Shown here piece by piece: positions 2,860-33,479 of a stretch of DNA of 57,525 nucleotides; positions within the stretch are counted from its first letter, which is position 1, and every line of letters starts with the position of its first letter. Origin of the DNA: Mobula hypostoma (Eukaryota); NCBI RefSeq assembly GCF_963921235.1, contig NC_086101.1:31248001-31305525 (forward strand), given 5' to 3'. A model generated the notes under the pieces. That model made no database searches. It was not told the origin of the DNA and was given only the letters and a program-made list of their open reading frames with translations. Made by a program: the position numbers and the translations under genes.

Positions 2860-3168
2860 GTGGAAGGGAAGTAGCGACTGGCAGCTTTGGCTCTTCGATG
2901 TTACTGGATCCCAAATTTACAGTCAATCACAGCAAGGAAGAAGTTGTTTGGGAGTGGAAAAATTGGAATAGCACCAAATCTCTGGTTATTTTAGATCACG
3001 TCCCTAGTAGACCTTCCATGTTTCCAAGTGAACAGTTCGAACACCGTTTACAGTTCAATATTTCTAATGGCGCGCTGACGATAAATCCACTGGAACGCCG
3101 TGATGAAGGAATTTACATCGTATATGTACAGGGAGAAAAGAAGAAAGAAGTAGTTTTGCACGTTTACG
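2860..3168 (+). CDS. Exon: Ig V-type domain lacking the canonical disulfide
   Basis: Acceptor tttcttatccaaatcAG, donor G|GTGAGT, 309 nt, phase 1/1. C-strand VVWEW, D/E/F strands [24 protein letters not shown] (DxGxY), no Cys, as in CD2/CD58/SLAM/CEACAM N-domains. Sequons NHS, NST, NIS. Confidence 0.9.
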
Positions 3169-6100: not shown

Positions 6101-9100
6101 GTTCATTGACTTGCTGGAAAACAAATCTTCTCCCAAGTTGCAGTTCTCTTGGAGACTGCATCAGGTTTTTCTCCAGGATTTCCCTGTATTTTGCTGCATT
6201 CATTTTAACCTCTACTTTCACAAGTCTTCAAGAGCCTGTTGCAGTGAAGAATCCCCACAGCACGATGCAGCCACCATCATGCTTCACGGAAGGATGGCGT
6301 GTTTTTGATGATGTGTGGTGTTTGCCTTGCACCAAACAGTGTTTAGTCTGATGGCCAAAAAGCTCAATTTTGGTTTCATCAAACCATAGAACCTTCTAAC
6401 AGCTGACTTCAGAGTCTCCACATGCTCTCGGGTAAACTCTAGCCGAGATTTCACGTGAGTTTTTTTTCAGCAATGGCTTGTCTTTGCCATTCTCCCATAA
6501 AGCTGTGACTGGTGAAGCACCCGGGCAACAGTTGTTGTATGCTCAGTCTCTCCCATCTCAGCCACTGAAGCTTGTAGCTCCTCCCAGAGCTGATTCACCA
6601 GCAGTTGGACCTTCCAGATACAACTGTATTTTTACTACAATCAGTTGAAACACCCTGACTGCACACAGTGACCTCTGTTTAACTAATGAAGTGATTTCTA
6701 AAACCAAATGGCTAGCCAGTGATGATTTGGTGTGTCATATTAAAGGGGGTGAATACCTGCGCAGTCAATTATTGTGTGTTTTATATTTGTAATTAATTTA
6801 GATCACTTTGTAGAGATTTGTTTTCACTTTGACACGAGTCGTTTTCTGTTGATCAGTGTCAAAAAAAAACAAATTAAATCCACTGTGATTCAATGTTGTA
6901 CAACAATAATACATGAAAACTACCAAGGGGGCTGAATACTTTTTCTAGGCACTGTGTACAAGGAGCAATGTAGTGGCCAATTTGACCACCATTAACCTGC
7001 TACGTTTCATTGATTTAAATATTAGCTCTATTTGTCATACGTACATCAAAGCATATGGTTAAAATGAGTCATTTGTGTCAATGAGGAACACAGTCCGAGG
7101 ATGTGTTGGTCATTGACATAAGAGTTGTCATGGTTTTGGCAACATAACATGACCACATCTCTCTAACCATAACCCTTATGTCATTGGAATGTGGGAGGAA
7201 ACCAGAGCACCCAGAGGAAATCCATGTGGTCAGAGGGAGAACACAAACGCTTTACAGACAGTTGCAGAAAAAGACTGGGACACTCCTGTCTCTCCTGTGT
7301 TTCCCTCCCAGTGCCCTGTTACCTGTTCACCCGCTTCCTTCCTCTTTGTTGCAGCTGAAGAGAAATTACAAAATAAATTGACTTTAAAAATGCGCTGCTC
7401 GTGTGTAAATTGTAGCACATACAACCATGTTGCATAAAGGCAGCTCATTTTTTCCTGCATATTTGATACAAAGCACCAAGTAAAGTTTTGTCACAAGACT
7501 TGGAAGGAGAAAATGGCGACGCGACGCAGCTCGCAGCAGTCACTTCGGTGAATGATATCTGTTACTTGTCAAGTAGGATGCCGTGCACAATCCTGATTTG
7601 ATGGAGACAGATGTGAGAGCACGGAGGAACATCTGGTGAAACTTCTGAAATGCCGCTGCTACTGTGTGATCTGAAATCTCCCAGAGGGGAAGGCCCCGAG
7701 TCATCGGCTTTGCTTGTTGCTCAGCGGCCGGGGCGGGATCAAAGTGCTCGGCAGAAATGCCGCTCGGTGCTCGGCGTCGGAGGGCTGGTCGGAGGCTTGA
7801 AGTTTTCAGACGGACTCGGAGTCGGCTGTGGTCGGGTGCTCCAATGCTCCAAGCAAGTTTGCGGCGCTTCCGTCTGCGTGAGATGATGGAGCTATCGGGA
7901 CTTGAGACTTTTTTTTTACTGTGCCCATGGTCTGCTGTTTATCAAATTACGTTATTGCTTTGCACTGTTGTAACTATATGTTATAATTATGTGGTTTTGT
8001 CAGTTAGTCTTGGTTAGTCCTGTGTTTCTGTGATATCTTTCTGGAGGAACATTGTATCATTTTTTAATGCATGCATTTCTAAATGACAATAAATGAGGAC
8101 TGAGTGTCCTCATAATCTAATCTAAGTAACTGTAGTTCACTAATCTTATTTTCCTCTTTAGAAGAGCTGTCTGACGCTATGATATTGGACAACTTCAGCT
8201 CCCTCAGTTCCACCATCCAACTCACCTGTAACGTCAGCGGAGATCCACTTAAGTATCAGTGGCAGTACAATGGAGGGGAAATCTTGGAGCGTCACCAGCT
8301 AATGGACGGGAACAGAACTCTTATTGCTTCAAAACGTGACTGTGGAATCTTCACCTGTGTGGCAACCAATCTCGTCAACTCTGTGAGGGCAAATTACACC
8401 CTAACTGTTCCTGGTGAGTTTGCTTTACGGATAACAATCTGGGTATATTTCTGTTATCGCTTGCAGTTGATGTAATGTTGAATGCAACTTGAGCAAATCA
8501 GCACAACAGCAGCAACACAGATTTGGGGTTTTCAGGATTACAGTTCAGATGGAGATCACTGAGCCCACCAAGTCTAAACGCTCAGTTTCAGGCTCCCCTA
8601 CCTGCTGTGACCTTATTGATGTACCTCATTATTTTATAAATGTCTCCAACGCTGCCCGCATCTTCCAGGAGAAAGATGCCTAATGTATCTAGCCTCTCCA
8701 GTCCCAGTAACAGCCTCATAAATCTTTTTCCCTCTCTTTTCAGTTTAATGACAACCCCTTGCCATACAAATCCTTTTCTTTGAGATACTTATCCAGACCC
8801 CTTGAACACTAAAATTAAATCCTTCTCCATTATGACCCCTTAGCAAAGCAGTTCAGACCCTAATCAGTTAGATTCTTCCAACCATCTCCATCCTATGTCA
8901 TCTTGTTTTTACCCTACCTATCTAATCTATCCATACCCTTCTGTTTTTAAACACTATTATCCATCTGATGTCCTCTATTCTTCCAAGGAGAACAACCCTG
9001 TCTTAAATGCACTTAGTCTATTTCTGACACTTTTCTCCCTTTTCTGAATCTCTGGGGATGAACTGTCTACCAATATCTTTTATAAACTTGTCTACTCTTA

Positions 9101-12100
9101 CAGCTATCTTGACTATACTTCTTCCCACCTTGTCATCTGTTAAAATTGCCATTTCCTTTTCTCAGTTCTTTCGTCTCCTCCAAATCTGTTCTCAGGGTGA
9201 GGCTTTCATTTCAAATCTGTTCTCAGGGTGAGGCTTTCATTCCAAATCTGTTCTCAAGGTGAGGCTTTCATCTCAAATCTGTTCTCAGGGTGAGGCTTTC
9301 ATTTCAAATCTGTTCTCAGGGTGAGGCTTTCATTTCAAATCTGTTCTCAGGGTGAGGCTTTCATCTCCAGAACATCAGAGATGCCCTCCGTCTGCAAAGA
9401 ACATGGTTTCCCTTCCTCTACCATTCACGCTGCCCTCACCTGCATCTCCTCCATTTCCGGACATCTGCACTTACCCCATCTCCTGCCACACGAACAGGGA
9501 TAGAGCTGGGAGTTCTTGTCCATGCCTACCATCCCAAGAGCCTTCGCATCCAGCACACAGTTCTCTGCAACTTCTGCCATCTTCAATAGGATCCCGCCAC
9601 CAAATACATCTTTATGCCTAAACCCTCCCACTGCTCTCTGCTTTCTGCAGGGATCACTCTCTCCATGATTATCTTGTCTATTAGTACCTCCCCACTAATC
9701 TCCCTCCCTACCGAAAGTGGAAGTAGTGCTACTGTTGCCCATTCACTTCCTCCCTTACATACATTCAGAACCTCAAACAATCCCTCCAGGTGAGGCAGCA
9801 CTTCACCTCTGAATCTATTGGGGTTGTCTACTCTATTCAGTGCTCCCGATGCGACCTCCTCTACATTGATGAGACCCAGTGTAGATTAGGGGACCACTTT
9901 ATCGAGCACCTTCACTCCATCTGCAACAAGCAATACTTCCCAGTGGCTAACCATCTGAATTCCAGTCCCTACTCCCATTTCAAGATGTCAGTTCATACCC
10001 TCTTCTACTGCCACGGCAAGGCCACTCTCAGATTGGAGGAGCATCACCTCCTATCCTGTCTGGGTAGCCTCCTACCTGATGACATGAAAATCAATTGTTC
10101 TAACTTCTGGTAGTTTTCCCCACTCCCTCTTACCTCTTCTTCCTTTCCCCACTTGTTCCCATCTTGCCTCTTCTCCTTTCCTCACTTGCCTATAACCTTC
10201 CCCAGTGCTGCTCCTCCTTCCCTTTCTCCCTTTGGCCGATCATTCGCTCCTTTCACATCCTTCCTTCAGCCCTCTACCTTTTCCTCCTTTAACCTCAGGG
10301 CCTCTCACTTCATCTCCCACCCACCTGACTTCACCTTCCAGCTTGTACTCCTTCCCCTCCCCCACACTTACTCTGGCTTCTTCCCCGTCCTCTTCAGTCC
10401 TGCTGAAGGATCTCAGCCCAGAATATCGACTGTTTATTCTGCTGACCTGAGTTTCTCCAGTATTTTGTATGTATGACTCTGACAAACAGCCAATGTGTAA
10501 AAGACACATTGTGCAAGTAAAAGAAATACATAATATTCAGAACGTGAGTTGTGGAGTCCTTGAAAATGAGTCTGTATGTTGTGGAATCAGTTCAGAGTAG
10601 TGGAGAGTGGAGTTATCCATGTTGGTTCAAGGGAGACTTATGGTTGTGTGGTCAACCTAAAGCTCTTGTACCTCCTGCCCAATGGTAGTGGTGAGAGGGG
10701 AGCATGGCCTGGATAGTGGGGGCCAAGTGGTTAAAGCATTGGACTAGTGACCTGAAGGTTGTGAATTTGAGCCCCAGCAGAGGCAATGTGTTGTGTCCTT
10801 GAGCAAGGCACTTAACCACACGTTGCTCTGCAACGACACTGGTGCCAAGCTGTATGGGTCCTAATGCCCTTCCCTTGGACAACATTGGTGTCATGGAGAG
10901 GGGAGACTTGCAGCATGGGCAACTGCTGGTCTTCCATACAGCCTTGCCCAGGCCTGCGCCCTGGAGAGTGAAGACTTTCCAGGTGCAGATCCATGGTCTC
11001 GCAAGACTAACAGATGATGATGATGGATGCTGCTTTCCTGGGGCAGCGCTCCGTGTAAATGTAGACACAGGCTGTATATGTTGTTCATGCGCTTGCTGAA
11101 GCTTGGCCCAAAGTTTTGAACCTCCAACTTTAGAATGTGAAACCTCTTTAGACCATTTCGAACTATTTTCCAGTTTAGGCAGTTGGTGCGAAATCACTCG
11201 TCTCCTTTCAGATCTTCATGTTCTGTCTTCAGTCCTGCATTTCTTCACTTTCTTGGTAGGGCAAGTCGTCCTGTTGGCTGCAGACTTTCATTGATTCCAT
11301 TATGTTTCTTGTGTTTACTATGCCTGCAAGAAAATGAATCTGAGTTGTATATGGTGACATATATGTACTTGGGTTATTAATTTACTTTGAACAAGACCGG
11401 ACCTGTAGTAGTGTAATTTATCTTCAGAAAAACAAAGCAAGAAATAGTAGAGTCAGGTCTATGCTTTACATAGGACTTTGGATGGTGTTTTGAAATAAGG
11501 GCTAGTTCCTTCTTTGACAATTATGAAAATAAGGAGAATGGTCTTGCCTCTTGTTAAGTAATGCATGCAAAAATCTTTCCCCTTCCTCTGTGATTCTTCC
11601 GCATCCTTCCACTTCTCTTACTTTGGCATAGTCATCGAACTGTTGGATACTAATAAACATACTCATGGTCGTCTCGTACTCCAACTAGAAATAACAACAT
11701 TTCAGTGATAATTCTGGCTATTTTGTAGGTTAATTATTAAGTGGTGTGATGCAGTTGCTGCAGTAAAACTGGTTTCTAGAAAATATTCAATTAGCTAAGC
11801 TATTAGAAAACTTACTGACTAATTACATGTAGGTGATTATATAAAATTAGAAGCAAACACAGCAAAGTTAATCTACAAGAAAAATAACAATTTTACGCTA
11901 ATCCAGCATTTGGGGTGTCACAGTACTGTAGAGTTTAGTGTAATGCTATCACAATGCCAGTGACCCAGGTTCATTTCCCACTGCTGTCTGTAAGGCATTT
12001 GTATTGCAGGAGTTGATAGCTTTCATGGTCATTTCTCTGGTGCGCTGATAGATTCTTTCAATTTATTTTCATATGCAGGCTTTCTCCCCGAGAACATCGC

Positions 12101-15100
12101 AATTGTGGTCCTGTTTATCATAGAGCTCGGGGTTTCGCTGTATCGTATCGTGCCAGTGCTTCTTTGCTGCTGGAAAAAGGAATTGGGTAAAGGTATCCAT
12201 CACTGTATGAATTATATTTAAATATAAACACTCAGTTAACATTGGGCTCTGGAAGGGAAGTTGCTAATGAATAGCGTCAAGTGAATAGGGCGTGGGTTTT
12301 TAAAGATAAGCTGATGGAATCTGGGAAGAGATGTAATTCCAACTCCAGGGCAGCAAGGGACATTTCGGAGTTTAGTCCAGTGGATGAAGGGAAGAGAATA
12401 GTCACAGGACAGATGAACAGTCTCAGTCAGAGCCATCCATGGGTTCAGTGTACTTTGCAGGGAGATCTCTGGGTGAATGATGGAGACATCAGTGAATTGG
12501 GGTTATCATTGCACCTCTGCATAATCTTTGAACAAACAGTTTGCTGGCAACACAGGACGTAGTGATGATTAGTTCAGCGCAGGCGGACCTTGTGATGGTC
12601 ACTTAAGCCAGTGTTCACACTCAGTCCATTAGACATGAAATGGCTGAGATGGAGGGTAAACCATGGAGAGGGAGTAGGAACCCAAGAATATCAGAAGCAG
12701 GAGGTAGCCATTCAGCCTTTGTCTGAACATTTACCTCTCTCAGTTACCAGCCCCAACCCATATCACTGCATTGTGTTAACCTCTAAATCAATCTTTGCCC
12801 TAAAGGTAGTTGGTGACAGAATCTCCACAGCCCTTTGGAGAATCGCAAAGGTTACCAAACCTGTTTTTCCACCCGCCTCCCCCCCCCCATCTGTCCTGAA
12901 TGGCTGAGACCTTATTCTGAGCCTGTCATTCCTCGTTGAAGTTATCCCAGACAGGATTGCCATCAACTCCACTTCATGATAAGCAAGCCCCACTGAATGT
13001 TTCATAAGGATCTCCTGCTCTCCTTTTCTGCCATGGAGGTTTATAGGATTAATCTTTAAATGCTGAACCTGAACTCTCTTCCTCTTATCCCACATCTACC
13101 CGTTCCTGAGTGGAGGAAACCAGATCTGTACATGTGTTAAAAGTTGGAAGAAATTGCTTTATTAGACTTGATTAGGGATAAATACAGAGAGAAAAACAGT
13201 TAATGAATATAGTAAGAGACAATGTACATAATCACCAAGCCAATTTACGCAAGGGACCACAAATATCCACCTGCCTTTTCCAGTCACCCCTCACCCATCT
13301 TGATGTCCTTGTGCCTCTGTCTCCAGCTCTTACCACCAGTCACTGCCCAGCCTAAGAGAAGGTTCCCTTTTGCCTAAAGAAACTGTCCCTTTTTATACCA
13401 TTTCAAGATCTTTTACTCTTAATACTTTCCCATACAAACTTTTCCCCCCCCATTTTCTACTCGGAAAGCTGTAGACTAGTACTCACAATAAATTTCCAAA
13501 ACATTGCTGAGACTAGTTCCCTTGTGCTTTCTCAAAGCATACACGTTCAGGACTAACTCCCTCCATTTTCTCATATAAGTTTCTATTTTGTTACACATCT
13601 TGGCGCATACTGAGGAGGAATTGAATATAACTCTTTCCTTACAGGGCAGCATGTTGATTTCCTTCCTAATCAATGTCCACACCTGTAACTTAATTTCCGG
13701 TCATCTGTGCACAAGGGCATTTGGGTCCCTCTGAGCACCAGCATCTTTTATTCTGCCCTTTTCTCCTACCAAGGTGAGAGTGATGATGCAGTGGGAGCAA
13801 AGGATTCAGCGATATTGAAGAGGATGTGATCTAACACCTGACTGAGTAGCTTCTGAAGCATGGATACGTGGATATGAATTTCAAAATGTCATGGGAAGGG
13901 ATTTGAGGAAGAAACTTTTCCAGGAGTAGGATTGAAGATTGGAGTATGGGTGAGGAGCAAATCAAGAAGGCAGCTCGCCACTACATTCTTGCAGAATAGA
14001 AAGAGAATCGTAAATGTTGGCCCCACTAGCAACGCCTGAATGAATTAAGAGAAGAAGAGGTGTCCCCTGGATGTAGTGGTGGTGAATTCCTAGGATCTGG
14101 TTCACCAGGTATCATTAGGCTCCCTGGACAGCCTTTACTCTTTCTATATTCTGTCCCTTCATTTGGGCAGTTCTTGTAACAGGAGTAACAGTTTGCATGC
14201 AGGACCACAACACTGCCCAGTGCCTGTGAGCATCTGGGTTCAATGATGTTGCAACCCTCAGCATCAGAAGAGGCTTCAGGATCAGACATTGAAACTTTAG
14301 TGGTACAGCCGGGGTTGGTTATTGTCACTAGTGACAAGACTGTGTCACTAGTGACTGCTACTTGATAATGAGATTACACAAGATACTAAAATGTAAGGTG
14401 TTTCCCTCTGTTGTGTTTTGCCCCTCCCTGAACTCCCCTCTCCTCTTTTCTGTCTCTTCTCCCCACCCCCCCGCCCCCCCCCCCCCCCACCAGCCCCTCA
14501 CGTTGTTGCTGTTGGCTGTGAGATCTTGCTGATTCCTGTGTGGAACCATTTTTCTGCCTTTCACATATTGAATGTTCTCGATTTGTTCCTCTGTAGCCCT
14601 GATGAGCAGAAAATGTTTGCTGTTCTTGAATCTTACTGATGTTCTGCTTCTTCTCATTATCTTCATTGCTTTCATATACTGGATTATGGTTAAAGGTAGG
14701 TGCACAGATATTATTTACTTGGAAAATAATGATCACTTCTGCACTCAGCAGGGTAACTGGAATGGAATGAGTATCTCAGTACATTGTGAGCTGCTTTACC
14801 TGGAACACCAGCACCTGCAGTCCTCAGCCCCACAGCCCTTGTCGGGAGTGGAGTGGGGTGGGTGGTGTTAGGGAAACCTGCTGAAGGATTAAACTTTAAT
14901 AGCTGAACATCAGTGATTCAGTTCAAAGCTGTTGGTCACAACCAGCGTGGTTTGGCCCAGTATAGATTAGTTTTGTGAGGTCAGACTGGGTGGCAGAAGG
15001 CATTTGAAGAAGTTTAAGTTGAAGCTCACGGAACTGAAGGTGTGTTCTAGCCCGGGTTAGATAATTGGTTTAGTGGTGGGATGCAAAGTGTGGGGATAAC

Positions 15101-18100: not shown

Positions 18101-21100
18101 TATGTCCCACAGAGGAAGAAGTTCTCAAATGGCAGGGATAGGCAACTGTGTTTGACAAAGGAAGTTAAGGACTGTATAAAGCCAAGGAGAGGGCAAATAA
18201 GGTAGCAAAAGTGATTGGGAAGCTTTTAAAATCCAACAAAAAGCAACTAAAAATAACAATAAGAAGGGAAAAGATGAAATATGAGGGCAGACTAGCCAAT
18301 AGTATAAAGCAGAATACCCGAAGTTTTTTCAGTTACATAAAGAGTAAAAGGGAGGTGAGAGTTGATATTGGACCAGTGGAAAACTGTTGGTGAGGTAATG
18401 GGGGATAAAGAAATGGCAGATTAACTTAATGGGTACTTTGTATCTGTCTTCATTATGGAAGACATTAGCGGTGTGCCAGAGGTGTTTGAGTTTCAGGGAG
18501 CCAGAGTGCTGTTGCTATCACAAAGGAAAAAGTTCCAGGCAAAGGTCTTAAGGTGGATGAGTCACCTGGGCCAGATGGACTACGGGCCAGAGTCCTGAGA
18601 GAGGTTGCTGAAGAGATGACAGATGCAGTGGTCATGATGTTTGCAGAATCACTTGATTCTGGCATGGTTCCAGAGAACTGCAAGGTTGCAAATGTCACTT
18701 CAATCTTTAAGAAGTGAGGCAGGCCAAAGAAAGGAAATTATTGGCCAGTTATCCTAATGTCAATGGTTGGGAAAATGTTGGAGTTTAATATTAAGGATGA
18801 GGTTTCAAGGTACTTGGAGACTAATTGTAACCCTCAGGTTCTGTCGGCTGCATAAGTCTGGGGAAGACAATCTCTGGCCCCGCCAAACGTGTGAAATTGA
18901 GGTGCAAAACCTCCTGTTTGTGTGGATGCTACGTGATTTGTTACCCTGTTACAAATCAGTATCATGAAATAACAAACAGTACACCATATGCAATTAAACT
19001 ATTTAGCTTTATAATTCTTAATTTGACTAAAGGGTTAGTAAAGAAAAACAAAAAGAAAAAGGTCCATTTTAATGGAACAGTGTAATGTGCACAAGTTGGA
19101 GCTCATGGTTTCCCTTTCACCAATCCTCCTTCGATTTCTACGGGCTTCGTCGACTCCCGGCTCAACTCCAAGTCCACTCCTTTCTGGTGTCTTCTCTCTC
19201 CTCCTCCCACCGAGCAGAAGACCCAGATCACCTGAGTGTCAGGCACACCCCACGGAAACACACTCCACTCACTGAATGACTCACTTTCCAAAGCCCCCGT
19301 TATCTCTAACCATAACCCAAACACTGCTTCTACAGAAAGACCATTACATTAGCAGTGAAACCTTTCCCAGGGTGTTAAATGATAAAATAAGCCAAACTCA
19401 GCATGGTTTCGGTAAAGGGAAATCTTGCCTGACAAATCTATTGGAGTTTTTCAAGGAAGTAAAAGCAGGGTGGACAAGGGAAAGGCAGTGGATGTCATTT
19501 ACTTGGATTTTTGGAAAGCGTTTGATAAGGTGCTACACATGAGGCTGCTTAACAAGATGGTGTTACAGGAAAGGTACTGGCCTGGATAGCGGAATGGCTG
19601 ACAGCCAGGAGGCAGCGAGTGGGAATAAAAGGGGCCTTTTCTGACTGGCTATCGGTGACTAGTGGTGTTCCTCGGGCATTGATATTGAGACCACTACTTT
19701 TCACATTGTTTGTCAGTGATTTAGATAATGGAATTGATGGCTTTGTTGCCAAGTTTCTGGATGATACGATGATAGGTGGAGGGGTTGGTACTGCTGAGGA
19801 AACAATGCGATGCAGCAGAACTTAGACAAATTGGAAGAATGGGCAAAAAAAGTGGCAGATGGGATACAGTGCTGGGAAATCTATGATAATGTATTTTGGT
19901 AAAAGGAGCAATATTGCGGACTATTTAAATGGGGAGAAGGTTCAAACATCAGAGGTGCAGAGGGACTTAACAGTCCTTGTGCAAGACTTCCAGAAGCTTA
20001 ATTTAGAGGTTGAGTCTCTGGTAAAGAAGGCAAATGCAATGTTGGCATTTATTTCAAGAAGAATAGAATATAAAAACGGGGGGATAACACTGAGTCTTTA
20101 TAAGACACTTGCCAGGCCGCAGTTGAAGTATTGTCCATAGTTTAGGGCCCCATATCTCAGAAAAGATGTGTTGTTATTGGAGGGAGTCCAGAGGAGGTTC
20201 ACAAGGATGATTTTGGGCATTAAGGACATGTGAGGAGTGTTTGGCAGCTTTGGGCCTGTACTCGTTGGAACTTAGAAGAATGCGGAGGGGGGAATCTCAT
20301 TGAAAGCTATCAAATATTGAAAGGACTAGATGGGGTGGATGTGGAAAGGATGTTTCTGATGAGGAGCAGAATCCAGAACTAGAGGGCACAGCCTCAAAAT
20401 TGAGGGGCGACCCTTTAGAACAGGTAAGGAGGAATGTCTTGTACCTGTGGCATCTAGACTTTTATGTATGTAGAGCAGGCATATTACTTTGTTACTGGAT
20501 GATTAACAGCAACTAACAGTAACAATCCTACATCAGTTCCTCATTGTCTGTGCAGATTGTACATGAGGTTGTTCTGTAAAGTGCCTTTGGATGGGTTACT
20601 ACATCCTAAAATCTTTTTTCAGCAGCAGTTAGTCTGATCAATCATTCTAGTTACACCCTCGCCCCACCCTCTATATCTATTACTTCACTTACTACACTGC
20701 ACTGTAGTATAATGCTGATTTCATTGTAAATACAAGCTGGTGTTTGAGTGCATTTTACTCCTATATAGTTATTGAACATTGTTGTTTTCAGTTGCTTGCC
20801 ACGCCAACAAGTGCACAGCAAATTTAGAATTTAGTGAATAAAGCTGGTTGTTAATAGAGATATGAGGGGAAGTGGGGGCCCTGTATCAGGTCACTCAATG
20901 ACTACACCATATCCATTTTCAGATCCAGGATGTGACAGCAGCCCGGAAACCTGGAGAATATTCTTCTTTACAAGGATTTGGACTGCGGTGATTTTCTTAT
21001 CCGTTGTGGCCCAATACTGTAAGTGTCAAAATTATCAAATCATTCAGCATTTCCATCCTTTCCCCAGGAACTCGGTCTCAGTGAAAACTTTTGCCGGTTC

Positions 21101-24100
21101 TCACTAGCACTTCAGCTTCTGAAAGGGAGAAGTAGGGAAATCATCAGCTGGTTATCGGGTCTGTCCCGTACTGGCTGCTGGTTATTGGGTCTGTCTCGTA
21201 CTGGTTGCTGACGTTTGGGTCTGTCCCGTACTGTTTGCTGACGTTCGGGTCTGTCCCGTACTGTTTGCTGACGTTCGGGTCTGTCCCGTACTGTTTGCTG
21301 ACGTTCGGGTCTGTCCCGTACTGTTTGCTGACGTTCGGGTCTGTCCCGTACTGGTTGCTGACGTTCGGGTCTGTCCCGTACTGGTTGCTGACGTTCGGGT
21401 CTGTCCCGTACTGGTTGCTGACGTTCGGGTCTGTCCCGTACTGTTTGCTGACGTTCGGGTCTGTCCCGTACTGGTTGCTGACGTTCGGGTCTGTCCCGTA
21501 CTGGTTGCTGACGTTCGGGTCTGTCCCGTACTGGTTGCTGACGTTCGAGTCTGTCCCGTACTGGTTGCTGACGTTCGGGTCTGTCCCGTACTGGGTGCTG
21601 ACGTTCGGGTCTGTCCCGTACTGGGTGCTGACGTTCGGGTCTGTCCCGTACTGGGTGCTGACGTTCGGGTCTGTCCCGTACTGGGTGCTGACGTTCGGGT
21701 CTGTCCCGTACTGGTTGCTGACGTTCGGGTCTGTCCCGTACTGGTTGCTGACGTTCGGGTCTGTCCCGTACTGGTTGCTGACGTTCGGAACAGCTCCGGC
21801 CTCTATTTCGCTGAATCCTGCTGGACCGTTAGTACAGAGCTGCCTGAATATCCCAACTGGTGGGATATCAGACTTGGGTTTAATATCTCTGCATATGTGG
21901 TGAAACTTATTTTGTGCAGCAGTACATTGCAATGCATATTAGTGAAAAAATATATAAATTACGAGAAGAAACCTATATAAACAAATTTGAAAAGTAGTGC
22001 AAGAAGAGAACAAAAAAGAAAAAATACTGAGGTAGTTGCATGTTCATTATATATTCAGAAGTCTGATGGCAAAGGGGAAGAAGCTGTTCCTGAATCGTTG
22101 AGTGTCTCTCTTCAGGCTCCTGTACAGCCTCCTTAATGGTAGCAACGAGAAGAGGTCATGTTGCATGTTCTAGGTGATGGAGGTCCATTTTAATGATGAA
22201 TACTGCCCGTTGAGGCATTGCCTTTTGACTGTGTCCTTGATGCTGGGGAGGCTAATGCCCACGATGGAGCTGGTCGAGTTTACAACTTACAGCAGTGTTT
22301 TCTGATCCTGTGCAGTGGCTTCCAAACCAGCCAATGATAGAGCCACGCACATAAAAGTTGCTGGTGAACGCAGCAGGCCAGGCAGCATCTATAGGAAGAG
22401 ATACAGTCGACGTTTCGGGCCGAGACCCTTCATCAGAACTAACTGGGGGAAGAGATAGTAAGAGATTTGAGAGGGGGAGGAGGAGATCCGAAATGATAGG
22501 AGAAGACAGGAGGGGGAGGGATGGAGCCAAGAGCTGGACAGGTGATTGGCAAAAGCGATACGAGAGGATCATGGGATGGGAGGGCTAGGGAGAAAGAAAG
22601 GGGGGGGGGGGAGCCCAGAGGATGGCCCAGGAGTATAGTGAGAGGGACAGAGGGAGAAAAAGGAGAGAGAGAAAAAAATTAATAATAATAAATAAATAAC
22701 GGATGGGGTACAAAGGGGAGGTGGGGCATTAGCAGAAGTTAGAGAAGTCAATGTTCATGCCATCAGGTTGGGGGCTACCCAGATGGAATATAAGGTGTTG
22801 TTCCTCCAACCTGAGTGTGGCTTCATCTTGACAGTAGAGGAGGCCGTGGATGGACATATCAGAATGGGAATGGGACTTGGAAATAAAATGTGTGGCCACT
22901 CGGAGATCCTGCTTTCTCTGGCGGATAGAGCGTAGGTGTTCAGCGAAACGGTCTTCCAGCCTGCGTCGGGACTCGCCAATGTATAGAAGGCCACATCGGG
23001 AGCACCGGACACAGTATATCACCCCAGCCGACTCACAGGTGAAGTGAATGATAGAGCCAGCTAGAATGCTCTCCACAGTACATCTGTAGAAATTTGTGAG
23101 CGTGTTTGGTAACGTACCAAGTCTCCTCAAACTCCTAATGAAATGTAGCCACCGTCGTGCGTTCTTTGTAACTGCACCGATATGTTGGGCCCAGTATTGA
23201 TGTTCAGAGATGTGGACTCCCAGGAGCTCGAAGCTGCTCACCCTTTGCAGTGATGAAGACGTGTGTGCATGTGCGTCTGTGTGTGTGTGTGCACTGCCTC
23301 AACGACTATCGCCCAGTTGCGCTCACTTCGACAGTGATGAAGTGCTTTGTGAAGACAAATTGCAGTGGGTCCAGGTCCTTGTTTAGGCAGAAGTTGATTT
23401 TGGCCGTGACCAAAACTTCCCCTTCATAAAGTACACCATCAATTCCTTGGTCTTACTGATGTTGTTGCAGCACTACCCAACCAGATGATCTAACTCGCTC
23501 CTGTAAGCCTCCCCATTGCCATCTGAAATTCTGCTAACACATCGGCAAATTTATAGAGGCCATTTGAGCTGCGCCTAGCCACACGGTTGTGTGTATGGAG
23601 ATTAGAGCTATGGGCTAAGCATGCATTCTTGAGGTGCACCAGTGTTGATTGTCAGCGACAGAGAGATGATTATTTCCGCACTGACTCATCTAGTGAGGAA
23701 GTCGTGGATCCAGTTGCAGAGGGAGGTACAGAGGCCCAGAACTTAGAGCTTGTTGATTAGAACTGAGGGCATGTTGTGTTGAATGCTGAGCTGTAATCAA
23801 TAAACAGCAGCCTGACACAGGTATTGCTATTGTCCAGGTAATCCAAGGCCAAGTGAGATTGCATCTATTGTGCTGATAGGCAAATTGCAGTGGGTCCAGG
23901 TCCTTAGGCAGAAGTTGATTTTGGCCATGACCAACTTCACAAAGCACTTCATCACCGTAGAAGCGAGTGCAACTGGGCAATAGTCGTTGAGGCAGCTCAC
24001 CTGCTCTTCTTGGGCGCTGGTATGATTATTGCCCTTTTGAAGCATGTGGGAATTTCCAGCTGCTGCAGTGAGAGATTGAAGGTGTCCTTGAACTCTCCTG

Positions 24101-27100
24101 CCAGTTGGATGTGTTACGTACCCCGTAACTGGGTTGCCAAACCAGCAGAAATGGACCACTTAGTTGGAGTCTGGATTACTGGAACTAAGAAAGTTTTATT
24201 AAAGAAATAAGTAACGCAGTACTCTAATCCTAAGGATATGAATGCAACAGGTTAGCAATGATAAAACACACATGTACACAGAATTAGGATAATAGGAATC
24301 AACCAAGCTCTATCGTAGTCTAGGGGTAAAATGATCAGTCTCAAGTGACACAGAGTTCAGTTCAGCTGAGTGCAGTTCGCAGTAATCGCTGTTGTGCCAT
24401 TGGAGAGAGAGAGCGCGCGAATGATGATATGCAAATCGGATTCAAACAGACCTTTGATATTCCTCGCAGTTAGCTTTCGGGCGAGCCCTTTTTAATGTCT
24501 TCTGAGGTCGCCGACTGTGACCCTTCCGTTCCGGATACGATCGTTCTTCCGTGGTGAACCCGGCACCCAGGCAAGGGCGGACACGCACACCAGGTTCCCG
24601 CCGATCGTACCTTTTCACCCTGTGCGTCTATGGTCGGTCCCGCGATCAGACCTCCAAACTCCCACCAACTTGTGGGGGCACACCGCTTTTCCAGGGTCTC
24701 GTTATCTCGTGATCTCGTGGTGTGTGTCGTGCCTTAGCGAACCTGTTCCTTTTATCCCCCTGCTGGGGTATCGCCTGTCCATCAAACTGCAAACATTTCA
24801 GGTTCAAAGCAACCGGTCTGTCAATACTTGGAACTGTGTCTCTTTTCATTAATCTCTCTCGTCTGTCATTAACATTTTGAACGCTTCTCCCTTTGTCTCT
24901 CTTATCTCTTTCATCAGCATCAATCTTCTGATAACTTGGTCTTTCGTCACAGATGGAAAAGGTTTTCAGTTTCCTACCAGCTGCACCAAGAGGGGCCCGA
25001 CACGTTGCAAGGGTTCACCCTCTTGAAAGATGTTCTGGTGTGACCTCCGCAGACAGAGCTCAGAGGGTCGCCAGGTACTACAGGGATTCACACAGGTGTA
25101 GTTTTATTCTCCCTTTCAAAGTGAGCATAAAAAGCGTTGAGCTCATCTGGCAATGAGACATCACAGCCGTTCATGATGTTGGGTTTCATCTCGTTGGAAG
25201 TAATGGCCTGCGAGCCCGACTAGAGCTGATGTGCTTCCAATTTCGTCTCTAGCCTCAATCAGTATTGTTTTCTCGTTCTTAAAAATGGCCTTCTGTATGT
25301 TGTATTGGGACTCCTTGTGTGGTTCTGGATCACCAGTCTTGAATTCCACACATCTAGCCCTCAACAGACCTCGAATCTCCTGTGTTATTCGCGGATTTTG
25401 GTTTGGGTGTATCCAGTGTGTTCTCGAAAGCACACGTTCACCCACACAGGTCTTGATGAAGTTGATGACAACTGTAGCATGTTCATTCAGATTTGAAGAT
25501 GAATCCCTGAATATTGCCCAGTCCACTGACTTTTTTAAAAAAATTGGACTCCTGTTGGATTTGGTTCTGTCTCTGCAGAAGCTGTCCAACCTGCTGAGTG
25601 TTTCCAGCATTTCCTGTTTATATTGATTTTTTTTTGGCTTTAATTAATTGCTTGTATTCCTTTCAAAACTATTTTTTTTTCACTGATTTAAGTTTCATTG
25701 GTTTTAATGTTTCTGGGTGGGGATTGGCTTTGGTACCTGAGGTTTCAAGAGTGGTTTTGTGGGCAGAGCTGGTTTCAGTTAGTATGTCTCACCCTGTCAC
25801 AAGCGTGATCCTAGGCCCTGCTTGACCTGGAGCAGACTTGAGTAGTGGGCTTGGGTGTTCCAGTCCGGAGAAGGTGAAACTGTGAGGAAACTGTGGACCT
25901 GGCTCCCTGTTGGGAAAATTCTGACTTGTGTTGGGCCTCACTGTAGCAGTAGAAAATGCCACAGATAGAAAGGACAGAGTGGAAATGGGGCAACTGGTAT
26001 GTGAGGGGCACAGGCGCAGACTGAATACGAGTTGGGGGGGGGGGCGGTGGTGGAACAACAAAGTTGTGACCCAATCTGCATTTAATCTGTACTCTGAACA
26101 CAGGGCACTGAACTGGGCGGGAAGAAATATAGGTGGGTCCCTGCTTCACCTGGAAGGACGGTTTGAGTTCCTGGTTTGGGGAAGAGAAACAGTGAAAGGA
26201 GTGTTAAATCTTGAAATTGCCTGGGAAAATGCCACAAGATGGAGACTGCATGGTGGGGGTGGACGATCAGGGCGGGCAACAGTAAGAGTTCCCTTTAAAA
26301 TGCTGGAAGTGGAGGGGAAGGGAGTAAGGGTCTGTTGGGACCTCACAGGAATTGGAAAGTTTGTTACTGAAGGCAGGGGGCACTCTGACCTCAGTCCAGG
26401 AGAAAGGGGTAAATACAGAGGTTGGGGAAATGCAGGAGTTGTGGTTATGGGCTGTGTGCACAGTGTCTGAGGAGAAGCCAGGGTTCAGGTGGAAGGAAGA
26501 GCTTTCAGAGGCACCTGCGCAGAAAGTTTCTTCAGTGGAGCGAATGGAGAGTTTCACCCAAGCGTACTGCACATAGCACTGCTGTTTGCAACACCTCACA
26601 GGAAATGAAATGCACAGACTGTACACATGAACTGATTGATTTATAAGGGTCAGGCAGGAGCACTGATACAGGGAATAGTGGCCTGAATGGGAGAGAGATG
26701 ATCCATCTTCCCATGGGGAAAGCCTTGCTCCGGAGTAATGAGAAGGGGCAGATTTCCTGATCCAGCTCCCAATGCAAGTTGAAAGACTGTATCCAGCCAA
26801 GGGGTTTCCATCCAGTTTCAGGCACTGGCCAGGGAAGCAGAATTTCCTGGTTTCCTCCTAGTGAAACACCCTGGGAGGCTTACTTGTGGGCCTTGTGAGT
26901 AAAGTGGCTTTTCTGTTGATGGGTTAATCTTTTGCTGCCCAGTCTGGTAACCAGAGATGCCATCTGCACTTAGTGCTAACTGTGAGGCAAGGATGTAGAG
27001 AAAAGACCAGACTATCTGAACAAAAGAGTCAATTGTACCTGTTTAGAGCCTGGTGGTGAGATGCAAATAACCCCTGACAATATTGTGCATTATATATCCA

Positions 27101-27794
27101 GAATTTATAAAGAGCTTTTACTTCATTTCAGGTAGAGACAAACGTGGAAGTGAGGATGGCAGTACTGTCAAAGGAGAGCAGGTATGTAGTCAATGCGAAT
27201 TGCTGCCATTTGTTATAAAGTTCATTTCCTGTGTTAAGCTGACTGACACAAACCCCCACGTTAACCCAAACACAATTCATAATGCTGCTGTCCCTCAGGT
27301 GCAGCCCAGGGAGAACGTCAGCATCTGGGCTGATCTCTGTGGGCGGCACAGTAGCGCAATGCTTTTACAGCGCCAGGTTCGGTTCCTGCAACTGTCTGCA
27401 AGGAACTTATACGTTCTCCCGGTGACTCCATTGCTCTCCACCGGGTGCTCCACGCTCCTCCTATGTCCCGAAGACACATCGATCAGTAGGTTGATTTGCC
27501 ACAATGCTGTAATTGGAAACGGAGTCTTGTTGGATCAGAAAGGCCTGTTACTGTCCTGTATCTCTTAAATAAAATAAAATGCTCACATTCCTGAATCATT
27601 CCAAATTTGTGCCTGGTTCTTAACACTGATGCTGCCTTTGATCGTCTGTCTGTATCTCCCCCACCGAACAATGCTGCTCTTGATTGATTGGGATTTGCCG
27701 TTCCAAATAACAATATACTTCATTTTCATTTTAGGATGATGGAGAAGTGCAGGAATTGAAGCAGTCTGCACCAGATCACCCAGATGATCAATGA
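2860..27794 (+). CDS. Spliced gene (5' exon outside window): IgV + IgC2 + five-TM membrane protein with CD47-like topology and a CD2/SLAM/CEACAM/HepaCAM-like ectodomain
   Basis: Exons 2860-3168, 8162-8413, 12079-12192 (or -12186), 14597-14695, 17229-17351, 17437-17508, 20923-21018, 27132-27181, 27735-27794. All have canonical AG acceptors and, where internal, GT donors; phases match and the join has no internal stop. Translation: [103 protein letters not shown]/[288 protein letters not shown]. Confidence 0.8.
3760..3985 (+). mobile_element. CR1-type 3' tail fragment
   Basis: Ends gggcctgtttccatgctctatgac, like the CR1 3' end at about 56070-56110. Confidence 0.6.
4290..5395 (+). mobile_element. 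Rex1/Babar LINE 3' fragment with (TA)n tract
   Basis: [11 protein letters not shown] (RT motif) and [14 protein letters not shown]...[11 protein letters not shown]. (TA)n at about 5357-5378. Confidence 0.85.
5607..6954 (-). mobile_element. Tc1-family DNA transposon, internally deleted, long (~200 bp) TIRs
   Basis: Left end TA|CAGTCTCTATAAAAAGTATTCACCCC; right end reverse-complements to CAGTGCCTAGAAAAAGTATTCAGCCCC. Minus-strand transposase remnants [14 protein letters not shown] (about 6350-6395) and [17 protein letters not shown] (decayed DD34E motifs). Confidence 0.92.
7170..7270 (-). mobile_element. V-SINE (HE1-like) fragment
   Basis: gtgggaggaaaccagagcacccagaggaaa is the antisense of the V-SINE core GGTTTCCTCCGGGTGCTCCGGTTTCCTCCCAC. 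Confidence 0.75.
7502..8125 (+). mobile_element. Non-autonomous LINE-tailed retroelement, copy 1
   Basis: Starts GGAAGGAGAAAATGGCGACGCG, CpG-rich, ends AATAAA...(AATCT)n. Closely matches 16481-17179. Confidence 0.8.
8162..8413 (+). CDS. Exon: Ig C2-type domain
   Basis: Acceptor ttttcctctttAG (TAGAAG tandem acceptor), donor G|GTGAGT, 252 nt, phase 1/1. LTC...YQW..NG...GNRTL...[11 protein letters not shown] pattern. Sequons NFS, NVS, NRT, NYT. Confidence 0.9.
9060..10470 (+). mobile_element. Penelope-like element 3' part (GIY-YIG), decayed
   Basis: [36 protein letters not shown] is the Penelope GIY-YIG endonuclease, followed by a pyrimidine-rich spacer and a degenerate hammerhead at about 10396-10432. 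Confidence 0.88.
9181..9366. repeat. 31-bp minisatellite x6 (CAAATCTGTTCTCAGGGTGAGGCTTTCATTT) inside Penelope
   Basis: Unit starts at 9181, 9212, 9243, 9274, 9305, 9336. Confidence 0.95.
10480..11065 (-). mobile_element. Rex1/Babar 3' fragment interrupted by a SINE
   Basis: gagcatggcctgg...gatggatgctgctttcct matches the antisense Rex1 copy at 30415-30900. Confidence 0.7.
10716..11015 (+). mobile_element. tRNA-derived SINE with CORE-like domain and RTE-like tail
   Basis: A-box-like GGCCAAGTGG, degenerate B box, GTGTCCTTGAGCAAGGCACTTAACC (CORE-like), 3' CCATGGTCTCGCAAGACT. Confidence 0.7.
12079..12192 (+). CDS. Exon: TM1 ([38 protein letters not shown])
   Basis: Acceptor ttttcatatgcAG. Two in-frame phase-1 donors: after 12186 (GTAAAG) and after 12192 (GTATCC). 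Hydrophobic run followed by CC and a basic KK stop-transfer. Confidence 0.82.
12680..13130 (-). mobile_element. CR1 3' fragment, old
   Basis: caagaatatcagaagcaggaggtagccattcagcc resembles the antisense CR1 3' end at 52290. Confidence 0.55.
14597..14695 (+). CDS. Exon: TM2 ([33 protein letters not shown])
   Basis: Acceptor tttgttcctctgtAG, donor AAAG|GTAGGT, 99 nt, phase 1/1, strongly hydrophobic. Confidence 0.8.
16050..16480 (+). mobile_element. Rex1/Babar 3' end
   Basis: [11 protein letters not shown]...[11 protein letters not shown]...TSFRNSYFP; tail aataaatttactttgaacttt. Confidence 0.85.
16481..17179 (+). mobile_element. Non-autonomous LINE-tailed retroelement, copy 2
   Basis: Starts GGGGGAGGGGAGGAGAAGATGGCGACGCG, ends AATAAA...(AATCT)n. 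Homologous to 7502-8125. Confidence 0.8.
17229..17351 (+). CDS. Exon: TM3 plus cytoplasmic loop ([41 protein letters not shown])
   Basis: Acceptor tttttcactttgctgcAG, donor G|GTAAGG, 123 nt, phase 1/1. Confidence 0.82.
17437..17508 (+). CDS. Exon: TM4 ([24 protein letters not shown])
   Basis: 85-nt upstream intron with branch-point-like CTAAC, acceptor acttgtcAG, donor A|GTGAGT, 72 nt, phase 1/1. Confidence 0.8.
17725..20440 (+). mobile_element. CR1 LINE ORF2 (APE to RT), decayed, interrupted by a solo LTR
   Basis: [12 protein letters not shown]...[11 protein letters not shown]; [18 protein letters not shown]; VTSGVP...[10 protein letters not shown]...KFLDDT. Confidence 0.92.
18826..19377 (-). 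mobile_element. Solo LTR inserted in CR1
   Basis: Begins TGTAACCCT, ends AGGGTGTTA with the terminal CA and TSD partly lost. CR1 sequence (gagactaat/gataaaataagcc) is continuous across it. Orientation tentative. Confidence 0.7.
20923..21018 (+). CDS. Exon: extracellular loop with Cys plus TM5 ([32 protein letters not shown])
   Basis: Acceptor ccattttcAG, donor T|GTAAGT, 96 nt, phase 1/1. Confidence 0.8.
21147..21788. repeat. 30-bp minisatellite, about 21 copies (CTGGTTGCTGACGTTCGGGTCTGTCCCGTA)
   Basis: Near-perfect tandem units with variant blocks CTGTTT/CTGGTT/CTGGGT; the first two units are more diverged. Confidence 0.98.
22346..23046 (-). mobile_element. 5'-truncated Penelope-like element, young, with 13-bp TSD
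   Basis: [37 protein letters not shown] (GIY-YIG). TSD AATGATAGAGCCA at 22333-22345 and 23047-23059. Confidence 0.93.
22404..22441 (-). ncRNA. Minimal type I hammerhead ribozyme motif in Penelope terminal repeat
   Basis: Minus strand reads UAGUU-CUGAUGA-AGGGUCUCGGCCC-GAAAC-GUC-GACUG: intact core, stem I UAGUU/GACUG, stem II GGGU/GCCC, palindromic ACGU in place of stem III. Confidence 0.75.
24112..24951 (-). mobile_element. Solo LTR (840 bp) with 4-bp TSD
   Basis: TGTTACG...CGTCACA termini. TSD GATG at 24108-24111 and 24952-24955. Minus-strand GATAAAAG near 24750 and AATAAA near 24195. Confidence 0.9.
25880..26580 (-). mobile_element. Penelope-like fragment, highly decayed
   Basis: Antisense similarity to the GIY-YIG region of the copy at 9060-10470. 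Confidence 0.5.
27132..27181 (+). CDS. Exon: cytoplasmic tail 1 ([17 protein letters not shown])
   Basis: Acceptor ttttacttcatttcAG, donor CAG|GTATGT, 50 nt, phase 1/0. Places basic residues directly after TM5. Confidence 0.72.
27340..27575 (+). mobile_element. V-SINE (HE1-like)
   Basis: GGCGGCACAGTAGCG head, ccgggtgctccacgctcctcc V-core remnant, CR1-like tail with (taaaa)n. Confidence 0.7.
27735..27794 (+). CDS. Last coding exon ([19 protein letters not shown])
   Basis: Acceptor cttcattttcattttAG, phase 0 matches the previous donor, TGA at 27792-27794, then AT-rich 3'UTR-like sequence with AATAAA at 28125-28130. Confidence 0.7.
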   Translation, partial: DDGEVQELKQSAPDHPDDQ

Positions 27795-31389: not shown

Positions 31390-32265
31390 CCACCAGCCTC
31401 CGCGTTCAGCACATAATTCCCTGAAACTTCCGCCACCTCCAACGGGATCCCACCACCATGCACATTTTTCCCTCCCCCTCACTTTCTGTGGGGATCGCTC
31501 CCCACGTAACTCCCTTGTCCATTTGTCCCTCCTCACTGATCTCCCTCCTGGCACTTATCCTCACAAATGGAACAAGTGCTCCACCCCTTCCCTTCCTACC
31601 ATTCAGGGCCATAAACAATCCTTCTAGGTGAGGGGTTACTTGCTGTGTTCAGTGCTCCTGGTGTGGCTTCCTGCATATTGGTGAGACCTGAAGTAGATTG
31701 GGAGACCGCTTCACTGAGCAGCTACACTCTCTCCGCCAGAACAAGCAGAATTTCCCAGTGGTCACCTATTTTGATTGCACTTCCCAATCCCATTCTGATA
31801 TGCCTATCCATGCCCGCCTCCACTGTCGTGATGACGCCACACTTAGGTTGGAGGAGCAACACCTTGTATTCCATCTGGGTAACCTCCAACCTGATGGCAT
31901 GAACATCGATTTCTCAAACTTCCAGTACTGCCCTCCACCCCCACCCTTCACCATTTACCATCCCCTTTTCCCTCACTTCATCTCCTTGCCTGCCCATTGC
32001 CTCCCTCTAGTGCTCTTCCATGGCCTTCTGTCTCTTTCACCAATCAACTTCCCAGCTCTTTACTTCTTTCCTCCCCCTCCAGGTTTCACCTATCGCCTGG
32101 TGTTTCTCTCTTTCCCCTCACCTTTTAAATCTACTCAGCTTTTTTGCTCCAGCCCTGCCAGAGGGTTTTGGCTGAAAACGTCAACTTTTTCCTCCATGCT
32201 GAGTTCCTCCAGCATTTTCTGTGCGTTGCTCAGATTTCCAGTATCTGCAGATTTTCGCTTGTATG
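31390..32265 (+). mobile_element. Penelope-like element 3' part
   Basis: LGDRFTEQLHS...[27 protein letters not shown], same C-terminus as the 22346-23046 copy. Confidence 0.88.
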
Positions 32266-33479
32266 TCAAAGCAGTTACAGAGAAAGGGCAGAGCAGGTGC
32301 TCAATAAGGTGCAAGGCTATAACAAGGTCATTGTGAGATCCAGATGGCATTAATGTGTATTAGGTTCAGGTTGGATCCTCTGAGGTGTTGATGCCCTGTG
32401 TCAGGCTGGGGCATTCCAAATTCTTGCTGTGAAGCTCAGATTGTGAGTGACCTGTTGGTTAGAACATGGCACTGTCCCTTATACTTGTTGTAGGGAAACA
32501 TTAACGAAGACAAGATCAAAATGCTGCAATATCAACAAATAAGTTATGATCTCACTGGTTCCTTATAATCGAACAAGGGAGGTTTGGGTAGTTTCTCTGC
32601 CTGAGTTTGGCATGAACTCATCCAGGTAGGGAACCCAGTCACAGCTCAGAGACCCCCCACCCAATGCACTATATAAGCACTATAAATCATGTGGTGTTAG
32701 ATGAAAATATTACAGATTAGATATAAGATGTGACCTCTGAATTCTGTATCCTACAATTTAATTCCTGGTACAAACCTGTCTCTACCCAGGAGGTCAATCT
32801 TATTTGCAAGCTGCTCATAAAATCTAAATATAATTTATTCTTAACTTCAGGTGATTTCAAACAAACCTCACCAGTGACCAAAACTCCCCTTCTCCCCCAT
32901 CCACTCTCTCCCGCCCACCCCCCTCTCCAGGAGGTGATGCTTTTTAACCACCTGTACCCGGCAGGCCCGGTGAGATAACATTTACTATGGGCCATTTTGC
33001 TTCAACTATACTGAGACAAATATATTTCATCGTACTTCCTTGATGAAACATACAGAAGTTGTATTTATTAGAAAACCTGAGTTGACAAAGTGCCGTCTAC
33101 TTTGTCAGATGCGCTTCACCAGCCGAGGAAACTTGCCGAAGAACACGATGTTTAACTTCTTGAGAGGTGACCGGGCGATGCCTGTCCTCAGTTGAGTCGT
33201 TTATTGCCCAGATCAAAGTTTCTTTCACCATCCCTTGACAATGATCTTCCCGTTCTAAGTCCTGACAGTGTCCCGTCATCAGCAGTAGGGTGTGATAAAG
33301 ATCAGACCTCTGAGCTCTTCCGTGTCAATACGGAAAACGCGAGGAACTCAGATCGCACAACGGGAGAGAATCAGGGATAATGGTTCAGGTCTATGATCTT
33401 CCTACAACCAATACAGTATAAGGAATTCAAAGTACATTTATACTGTAAATAGCAGGTTCATTGAACCACGAGGACAAAT

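Follow-up and report, generated by a model that had tools for sequence, protein, structure and literature searches.

A gene of Mobula hypostoma belongs to an uncharacterised elasmobranch family that carries immunoglobulin domains on a five-helix membrane anchor

We analyzed a stretch of 57,525 nucleotides from Mobula hypostoma (RefSeq assembly GCF_963921235.1, contig NC_086101.1, forward-strand positions 31,248,001 to 31,305,525; hereafter the window, numbered from its first letter), for which an earlier note, made from the letters alone, had proposed a hidden gene for a receptor with two immunoglobulin (Ig) domains and five transmembrane (TM) helices. We found that the gene is a member of an unnamed elasmobranch family that combines Ig domains with five helices, a family known to databases and uncharacterised. 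Taking the evidence together, we think it likely that the window contains an intact member of this multigene family and that its product is a surface protein with a V/C2 ectodomain, the C2 domain being stapled to the five-helix domain, for which the evidence points to an immune or self-recognition role.

The gene model consists of nine open segments on the forward strand, spanning positions 2860–27794, which when joined gave 390 codons with zero internal stops. Each exon had a pyrimidine tract and an AG ahead of it and a GT donor behind it, and the last segment closed at a TGA. The first seven exons were 309, 252, 114, 99, 123, 72 and 96 nucleotides long, all multiples of three in phase 1-1, and the 50-nucleotide exon 8 took the phase from 1 to 0 ahead of exon 9, which held the stop codon; such a nine-exon chain is far beyond chance. 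Translation of the joined exons, together with hydropathy, gave a V-like domain that lacks cysteine, then a C2 domain whose cysteines are Cys125, Cys163 and Cys168, then five hydrophobic segments, one membrane helix to an exon, and an acidic tail of 36 residues with zero tyrosines and none of the immunoreceptor tyrosine-based inhibitory, switch or activation motifs (ITIM, ITSM, ITAM), in agreement with the order of parts first described from the letters. The loop sequences quoted in that description and its seven ectodomain N-glycosylation sequons (NHS, NST, NIS, NFS, NVS, NRT and NYT) were all present in the translation, and the loops followed the positive-inside pattern that it had asserted, with 5, 3 and 3 Lys/Arg residues in the proposed inside loops versus 1 and 0 in the outside ones.

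The same chain has been annotated in Hypanus sabinus as LOC132394453, an 'uncharacterized protein' of 459 amino acids in RefSeq (P0219), which was 74% identical to our model over residues 7–390 in an alignment spanning TM4, the NNPGCDSS loop, TM5 and an identical stop. Positions 1–38279 of the window were colinear with positions 15313–55805 of the Hypanus locus (L001; chromosome CM057978.1, ~150.09–150.15 Mb) at 84–89% nucleotide identity, in exons and introns alike. All nine exons had positional counterparts in that locus with identical AG/GT borders, whose translation equaled the RefSeq protein, and 16 of 16 internal splice sites were kept. Because the exons match the Hypanus RefSeq model border for border, we regard the window model as real and as complete except for its leader, so that the nine-exon join stands at the span originally given for it. 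With the N terminus of the ortholog as query, we found no leader (signal-peptide) exon in positions 1–2859 or in the rest of the window, and because the region is colinear with that of Hypanus we place the leader ~5 kb upstream of the window start. The window holds exons 2–10 of an intact gene, and the leader exon alone lies outside; in what follows, exons 1–9 are those within the window. No paralog was found elsewhere in the window by tblastn.

The domains are distributed over the exons as follows, all on the + strand. Exon 1 (2860–3168; L001 17981–18289) encodes the membrane-distal V-type Ig domain, which has no cysteine and three sequons, and exon 2 (8162–8413; L001 26303–26563) encodes the membrane-proximal C2/I-type Ig domain, which has four sequons, a canonical Cys125–Cys168 pair and a spare Cys163 within a DCGxFxC motif. 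Exon 3 (12079–12192; L001 29781–29894) provides TM1, with a Glu and an Arg within the helix (hydropathy peak 2.36, also a helix in the AlphaFold model of the family), and the start of a cytoplasmic loop, KKELGK, which exon 4 (14597–14695; L001 32384–32482) continues with ALMSRK before TM2 (hydropathy peak 2.70) and a terminal WI..KG motif. TM3 and a further cytoplasmic loop come from exon 5 (17229–17351), whose Hypanus counterpart (L001 35955–36077) was a 100% identical translated match. We located the 72-nucleotide TM4 exon, exon 6 (17437–17508; L001 36163–36234), by scanning all phase-compatible AG...GT segments between exons 5 and 7, among which it was the sole strongly hydrophobic candidate (score 2.5). 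The extracellular loop bearing Cys326 and the Arg-containing TM5 are encoded by exon 7 (20923–21018; L001 39714–39812), the juxtamembrane part of the tail by exon 8 (27132–27181; L001 44859–44908) and the acidic tail with its TGA stop by exon 9 (27735–27794; L001 47737–47796), the stop being at the same place in Hypanus.

Used as a query against 1.84 billion representative proteins, the V exon retrieved numerous sequences of ~400–470 residues that shared the Ig-plus-helix layout, and a subsequent profile search with 27 full-length members returned 102 proteins, of which ~95 (clusters) belonged to the family. They came from at least 15 species of sharks, rays and skates, in the genera Pristis, Hypanus, Hemitrygon, Mobula, Amblyraja, Rhinoraja, Scyliorhinus, Heterodontus, Carcharodon, Cetorhinus, Mustelus, Chiloscyllium, Hemiscyllium, Stegostoma and Heptranchias; no chimaera or bony-vertebrate member was seen among the profile-search matches, and the next-best matches were teleost NCAM2 proteins (E ~1e-15), through their Ig domains alone. 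The window gene belongs to this family both by full-length colinear similarity and by exon–intron structure: the model was 42–46% identical to full-length Pristis paralogs, and the membrane part alone matched family members with E=1e-30 to 1e-43. Within one species, members share one chromosome or scaffold. Their architectures vary, with 1–4 V domains, a C2 domain present or absent, and 3, 5 or 10–12 helices, five being the number in most paralogs. They are named 'uncharacterized protein LOC...' or carry automatic names (HEPACAM2-like, CD48-like, CEACAM1-like, contactin-like, VEGFR2-like or unc-89-like). The gene was thus not hidden, as the earlier note had it, in that its shark and ray orthologs and dozens of paralogs were already in RefSeq as uncharacterized predictions; its statement that it recognised no named gene with this architecture is in keeping with our searches, which found such predictions only, and a full-text literature search found no published description of the family.

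Three further observations concern the wider set of matches. Five ray paralogs of ~700–790 amino acids (P0005, P0182, P0185, P0190 and P0233) have 10–12 predicted helices with a recurring WI..KG-type motif, which suggests that the symmetric helix exons were duplicated internally or that separate gene models were fused. A motif of the last exon (27735–27794 in the window), E-[LVM]-Q-E-L-[KQR], recurs in many ray members (as GEVQELK, ELQELR or EMQELQ). A bird protein with 'three helices' (P0141, Calidris pugnax LOC106899986) is not a relative; it is SLAM-like and carries an identical helix-plus-KKRRR unit three times over, probably an artefact of assembly or gene modelling that might pass for a multi-pass Ig protein.

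The recurrence of the layout bears on whether the model could be a chimera, its Ig exons coming from one gene and its helix exons from another, as might be feared with introns of up to 6 kb that are full of transposon debris. We consider this extremely improbable. The phases are continuous throughout, the same chain was annotated independently in Hypanus, where the 57.8-kb locus has no further gene call, the Ig-plus-five-helix layout recurs in the ~95 clusters and at least 15 species, and covariation of cysteines, described below, ties the two halves together. Helix exons belonging to a different gene had been named at the outset as a finding that would undo the proposal, and the assignment of Ig and TM exons to one gene held, with the Hypanus model carrying the same chain.

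We then considered the ectodomain, for which the ortholog P0219 and a Pristis paralog, P0157, served as proxies for the window protein in remote searches and modelling. The distal exon matched the Pfam V-set family with 25.6 bits, just under the cut-off of 26 (E=1.5e-5), and gave weak matches to CD4 D1 and CD48 in a search of PDB sequences, and the proximal exon matched Ig_3 (7e-9) and I-set (7e-8) in Pfam and the Ig domains of contactin, CEA and Robo in the PDB. The V domain of relatives also matched the Pfam families Receptor_2B4 and SLAM, the Hemitrygon ortholog (P0151) reaching 29.9 bits for Receptor_2B4 against a cut-off of 21. An AlphaFold model of P0157, built from a 27-sequence alignment, comprised two Ig domains and five helices with a mean predicted local distance difference test score (pLDDT) of 75.5, exceeding 90 across most of both Ig domains. 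Foldseek, with re-alignment by VIA, matched its ectodomain to CD2, CD58, CD48, SLAMF6 (NTB-A) and CEACAM1; CEACAM1 was the top Foldseek match (E=2e-12, TM-score by target 0.72), and the best CD2/SLAM-type matches had TM-scores by target of 0.62–0.82. As modelled, then, the ectodomain has a fold of the CD2/CD58/CD48/SLAMF6/CEACAM1 type, and the fold matches together with the Receptor_2B4 score of the ortholog substantiate the CD2/SLAM/CEACAM-type ectodomain suggested beforehand.

The likeness to these families extends to genomic behavior and stops at the membrane. Members of the CD2/SLAM family likewise have a V domain without the B–F disulfide followed by a disulfide-bonded C2 domain, and are encoded by clustered, fast-evolving immune genes; however, they are single-pass or anchored by glycosylphosphatidylinositol (GPI), and SLAM receptors signal through ITSMs (TxYxxV/I), whereas the window protein has five helices and a tail without tyrosine. 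Similarly, the rapidly evolving CEACAM/CEA multigene family shares a Cys-less N-terminal V domain followed by one or more C2 domains, but its proteins are GPI-anchored or single-pass with ITIM/ITAM tails and have no disulfide between Ig domain and membrane part, in contrast to the multi-helix anchor of the window protein. The protein is like CD2/SLAM/CEACAM in its ectodomain and like CD47 in its anchor, and has some, not all, of the features by which we tested membership of each group.

In CD47 the Ig domain is disulfide-bonded to the loop between TM4 and TM5, and the cysteines of the elasmobranch family suggest a comparable arrangement. The spare cysteine of the C2 domain lies in the DxGxYxC motif (DCG). 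By established Ig topology, this motif places it in the EF loop, on the side of the domain that faces the membrane. Among aligned members, 66 had both this cysteine and one in the TM4–TM5 loop and 5 had neither (Pristis P0025, the lamniform pair P0042/P0201 and the Scyliorhinus pair P0200/P0212, reflecting at least three independent events); none lacked the loop cysteine only (Fisher p 1.4e-6 for co-occurrence, uncorrected for relatedness). Because the two cysteines are kept or lost together, we propose a disulfide between Ig domain and helix bundle: the pattern suggests that the C2 domain is stapled to the bundle, in the style of CD47, through Cys163 and Cys326, with the difference from CD47 that the proposed staple cysteine here belongs to a C2 domain, in its EF loop. 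Within the membrane, the TM1 Glu/Asp and the TM5 Arg may form a second pair, as in the subfamily of the window gene the TM5 Arg always occurred with a TM1 Asp or Glu (13/13), a co-occurrence confounded by shared descent.

The membrane domain is conserved across rays and sharks, most visibly in the WI..KG motif past TM2, the Gly of which is nearly invariant in the family, and in the cysteine of the TM4–TM5 loop. To our knowledge, CD47 and the poxvirus protein OPG166 are the only other vertebrate-type Ig proteins set directly on a five-helix anchor; both likewise have the Ig domain immediately before the helices, the N terminus outside and a short tail without tyrosine motifs. The window protein shares with CD47 the five helices, a predicted external N terminus and a short cytoplasmic tail (by hydropathy, loop charge and the five helices of the AlphaFold model). 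A single disulfide-bonded IgV domain as the whole ectodomain, encoded by a single gene, is what CD47 has, in contrast to the two Ig domains, Cys-less distal V and multigene family found here. One possible account of this resemblance, tenable although we lean away from it, is that the family is a true and very divergent relative of CD47 that inherited the five helices, the Ig-to-loop disulfide and the one-helix-per-exon structure (which the CD47 gene may also have; a literature search found no source for it) and acquired a CD2/SLAM-like V domain. That account concerns origin and is compatible with the explanation that we prefer.

In favor of kinship with CD47 is the shared plan, in which an Ig domain leads straight into TM1, five helices and a short tail follow, and a disulfide probably links the Ig domain to the TM4–TM5 loop. 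In addition, the C2 domain repeatedly gave matches to V-set_CD47 (PF08204) that fell below threshold, with 16.7 bits for the window exon against a cut-off of 21 and 15.8–18.2 bits for 4 of 10 relatives (E=0.002–0.012, window exon included), and a language-model search of the Atlas with the helix part alone ranked a CD47/OPG166 cluster first, scoring 0.67 with one member and 0.66 with another that shares only ~15% identity with it. Scores below 0.9 in that search count as leads only, and because the accompanying matches were single-pass Ig proteins we suspect leakage of context into them; we thus treat the V-set_CD47 and language-model matches as leads, not evidence, for kinship.

Direct comparisons gave no such link. 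The CD47 transmembrane family PF04549 matched none of 10 full-length relatives (E<=1) and none of the window exons, and was not among the 25 most-matched families for 52 isolated membrane domains (E<=10); single helix exons gave only noise against Pfam, and a profile of 22 membrane domains had zero matches to PDB sequences at E<=10. Querying a word index with the P0157 membrane region returned four close relatives only, and is uninformative on remote homology. At the level of fold, a helix-only model found no convincing match in the PDB, AFDB Swiss-Prot, AFDB clusters, BFVD or the ESM Atlas. CD47 was absent from the 75 Foldseek matches in the PDB (E<=10), from the 50 entries listed following re-alignment by VIA, and from the listed matches in AFDB Swiss-Prot, AFDB clusters and the Atlas, and OPG166 was absent from those listed for BFVD; this negative result is a weak one because the model had a pLDDT of 74. 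The searches with PF04549 and the PDB profile accord with the prior remark that the protein has no clear sequence identity to CD47. Between the two origins that had been offered, a divergent CD47 relative or an independent Ig-pentaspan family, the missing sequence and fold link, including in the fold comparison of the helices that had been recommended, leans toward a five-helix domain that is independent of CD47 or only very remotely related to it.

To return to the gene itself, its comparison with Hypanus revealed rapid protein change. The synonymous (dS) and nonsynonymous (dN) divergences were 0.171 and 0.134, for a dN/dS of 0.79, with regional values of 0.59 for the V domain, 0.60 for the C2 domain, 1.21 for TM1–TM5 and 0.49 for the tail. 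Exons had diverged by 12.9%, more than the 8.9% mismatch of aligned intron blocks. These values, and the fact that the Hemitrygon ortholog no longer has intact TM4 and TM5 exons, would fit a window copy that is a decaying or relaxed member, a nascent pseudogene whose frame happened to be open by chance. The frame, however, is unbroken in both species across 389 codons that carry 151 substitutions, an outcome reached in only 0.5% of random simulations (P ~0.005), and the coding indels were all in frame, as compared with introns, which had 9.4 indels per kb, 19% of them multiples of three and 81% out of frame. Moreover, all 16 internal splice sites were conserved, and dN/dS was 0.5–0.6 in the V domain, C2 domain and tail. 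Because so few simulations stay open and the coding indels are in frame, the frame appears to have been kept by selection while the protein changed fast, and we judge decay of the window copy to be improbable. Fast change within a kept frame is typical of immune multigene families, although gene conversion, or a loosening of constraint on the helices, could also account for it.

In the Hemitrygon akajei ortholog (L002), unrelated sequence takes over in the TM4 exon after ~24 nucleotides, and the last third of the TM5 exon, including its donor, has been swapped for unrelated sequence (the two sites lie at L002 48417–48545 and 53930–54075). All three Hemitrygon RefSeq isoforms join TM3 straight to the RDKR tail exon, without TM4 and TM5. 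Both lost exons are in phase 1-1, so neither the reading frame nor the cytoplasmic placement of the tail is disturbed, and the ortholog is a natural three-helix variant. At the same locus the V exon is duplicated (13747–14073 and 23915–24214). Given that the symmetric phases of exons 6 and 7 permit the same skip in Mobula, again with frame and inside tail preserved, the main product in vivo might also be a three-helix isoform. We find this unlikely: the skip in Hemitrygon follows physical damage to the exons, whereas the window and Hypanus retain both exons with undamaged splice sites, the RefSeq model of Hypanus contains both, and most paralogs have five helices. The earlier note had cited transcripts that skip TM exons as something that would tell against its proposal; they are annotated in this one relative, with its broken exons, and the TM4 and TM5 exons of the window are intact.

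On the explanation that we prefer, that of an intact member with five helices, the protein would sit on the cell surface with its N terminus out. By analogy with CD2/SLAM/CEACAM proteins, its distal V domain would provide the surface that binds a partner on a second cell. Cys163, in the EF loop of the C2 domain, would bond with Cys326, in the TM4–TM5 loop, and this staple would fix the pose of the ectodomain on the helix bundle, much as the corresponding bond holds the Ig domain of CD47. Because the tail lacks ITIM, ITSM and ITAM sequences, we propose that any signal would travel laterally, the helix bundle relaying it to associated membrane proteins; alternatively, the protein might serve chiefly as a ligand or marker on display. 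From the clustering and number of the genes, their varying count of V domains and a dN/dS near 1, we propose an immune or self-recognition role, with selection either diversifying or relaxed.

Several points weigh against this explanation. The helices were modelled with moderate confidence (pLDDT 55–85), and two of the aligned members lacked the C2 cysteine only. The membrane-domain dN/dS above 1 and the exon loss in Hemitrygon could signify relaxed constraint in the ortholog group. All of the relatives are Gnomon predictions and the window gene is known from genomic sequence, and function is read from architecture only.

The family adds an undescribed candidate immune-receptor family to the cartilaginous fish, in which the repertoire of innate receptors is poorly charted, and does so with dozens of members in each genome, in the most ancient jawed-vertebrate lineage alive today. 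As a tentative generalization, which we put forward as possible rather than favored, sharks and rays may hold a large, clustered and fast-diversifying Ig receptor family on a CD47-like five-helix platform, with its ectodomain stapled by a disulfide. If the platform shares ancestry with CD47, then CD47 would be the lone bony-vertebrate survivor of an ancient group of pentaspan Ig recognition proteins, and the elasmobranch family would in that case be a polymorphic self/non-self or paired-receptor system without tyrosine motifs in its tails. The contribution of the anchor to CD47 signalling is still debated, and a family with 3, 5 and 10–12 helices offers natural variation for probing the purpose of a five-helix anchor. 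On a practical level, the RefSeq names HEPACAM2-like, CD48-like, contactin-like, VEGFR2-like and unc-89-like are misleading for members of this family.

The introns of the window gene contain several repeats. A minisatellite in the intron between exons 7 and 8 (21155–21788) comprises 21 copies of a 30-bp unit with a 97% match, because of which there are long artefactual open reading frames (ORFs) of 262 amino acids on the − strand and 232 on the + strand, and a 31-bp tandem repeat (5.9 copies, 96% match) lies at 9181–9364, in the intron behind the C2 exon. Three similar ORF fragments, at 22729–23241 (−), 9790–10113 (+) and 31698–32336 (+), look like remnants of Penelope-like retroelements, the first containing a GIY-YIG nuclease domain (Pfam E=1e-5). 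There is also debris of long interspersed nuclear element endonuclease and reverse transcriptase at 17645–20380, and an RNase H fragment at 43761–44114 (−).

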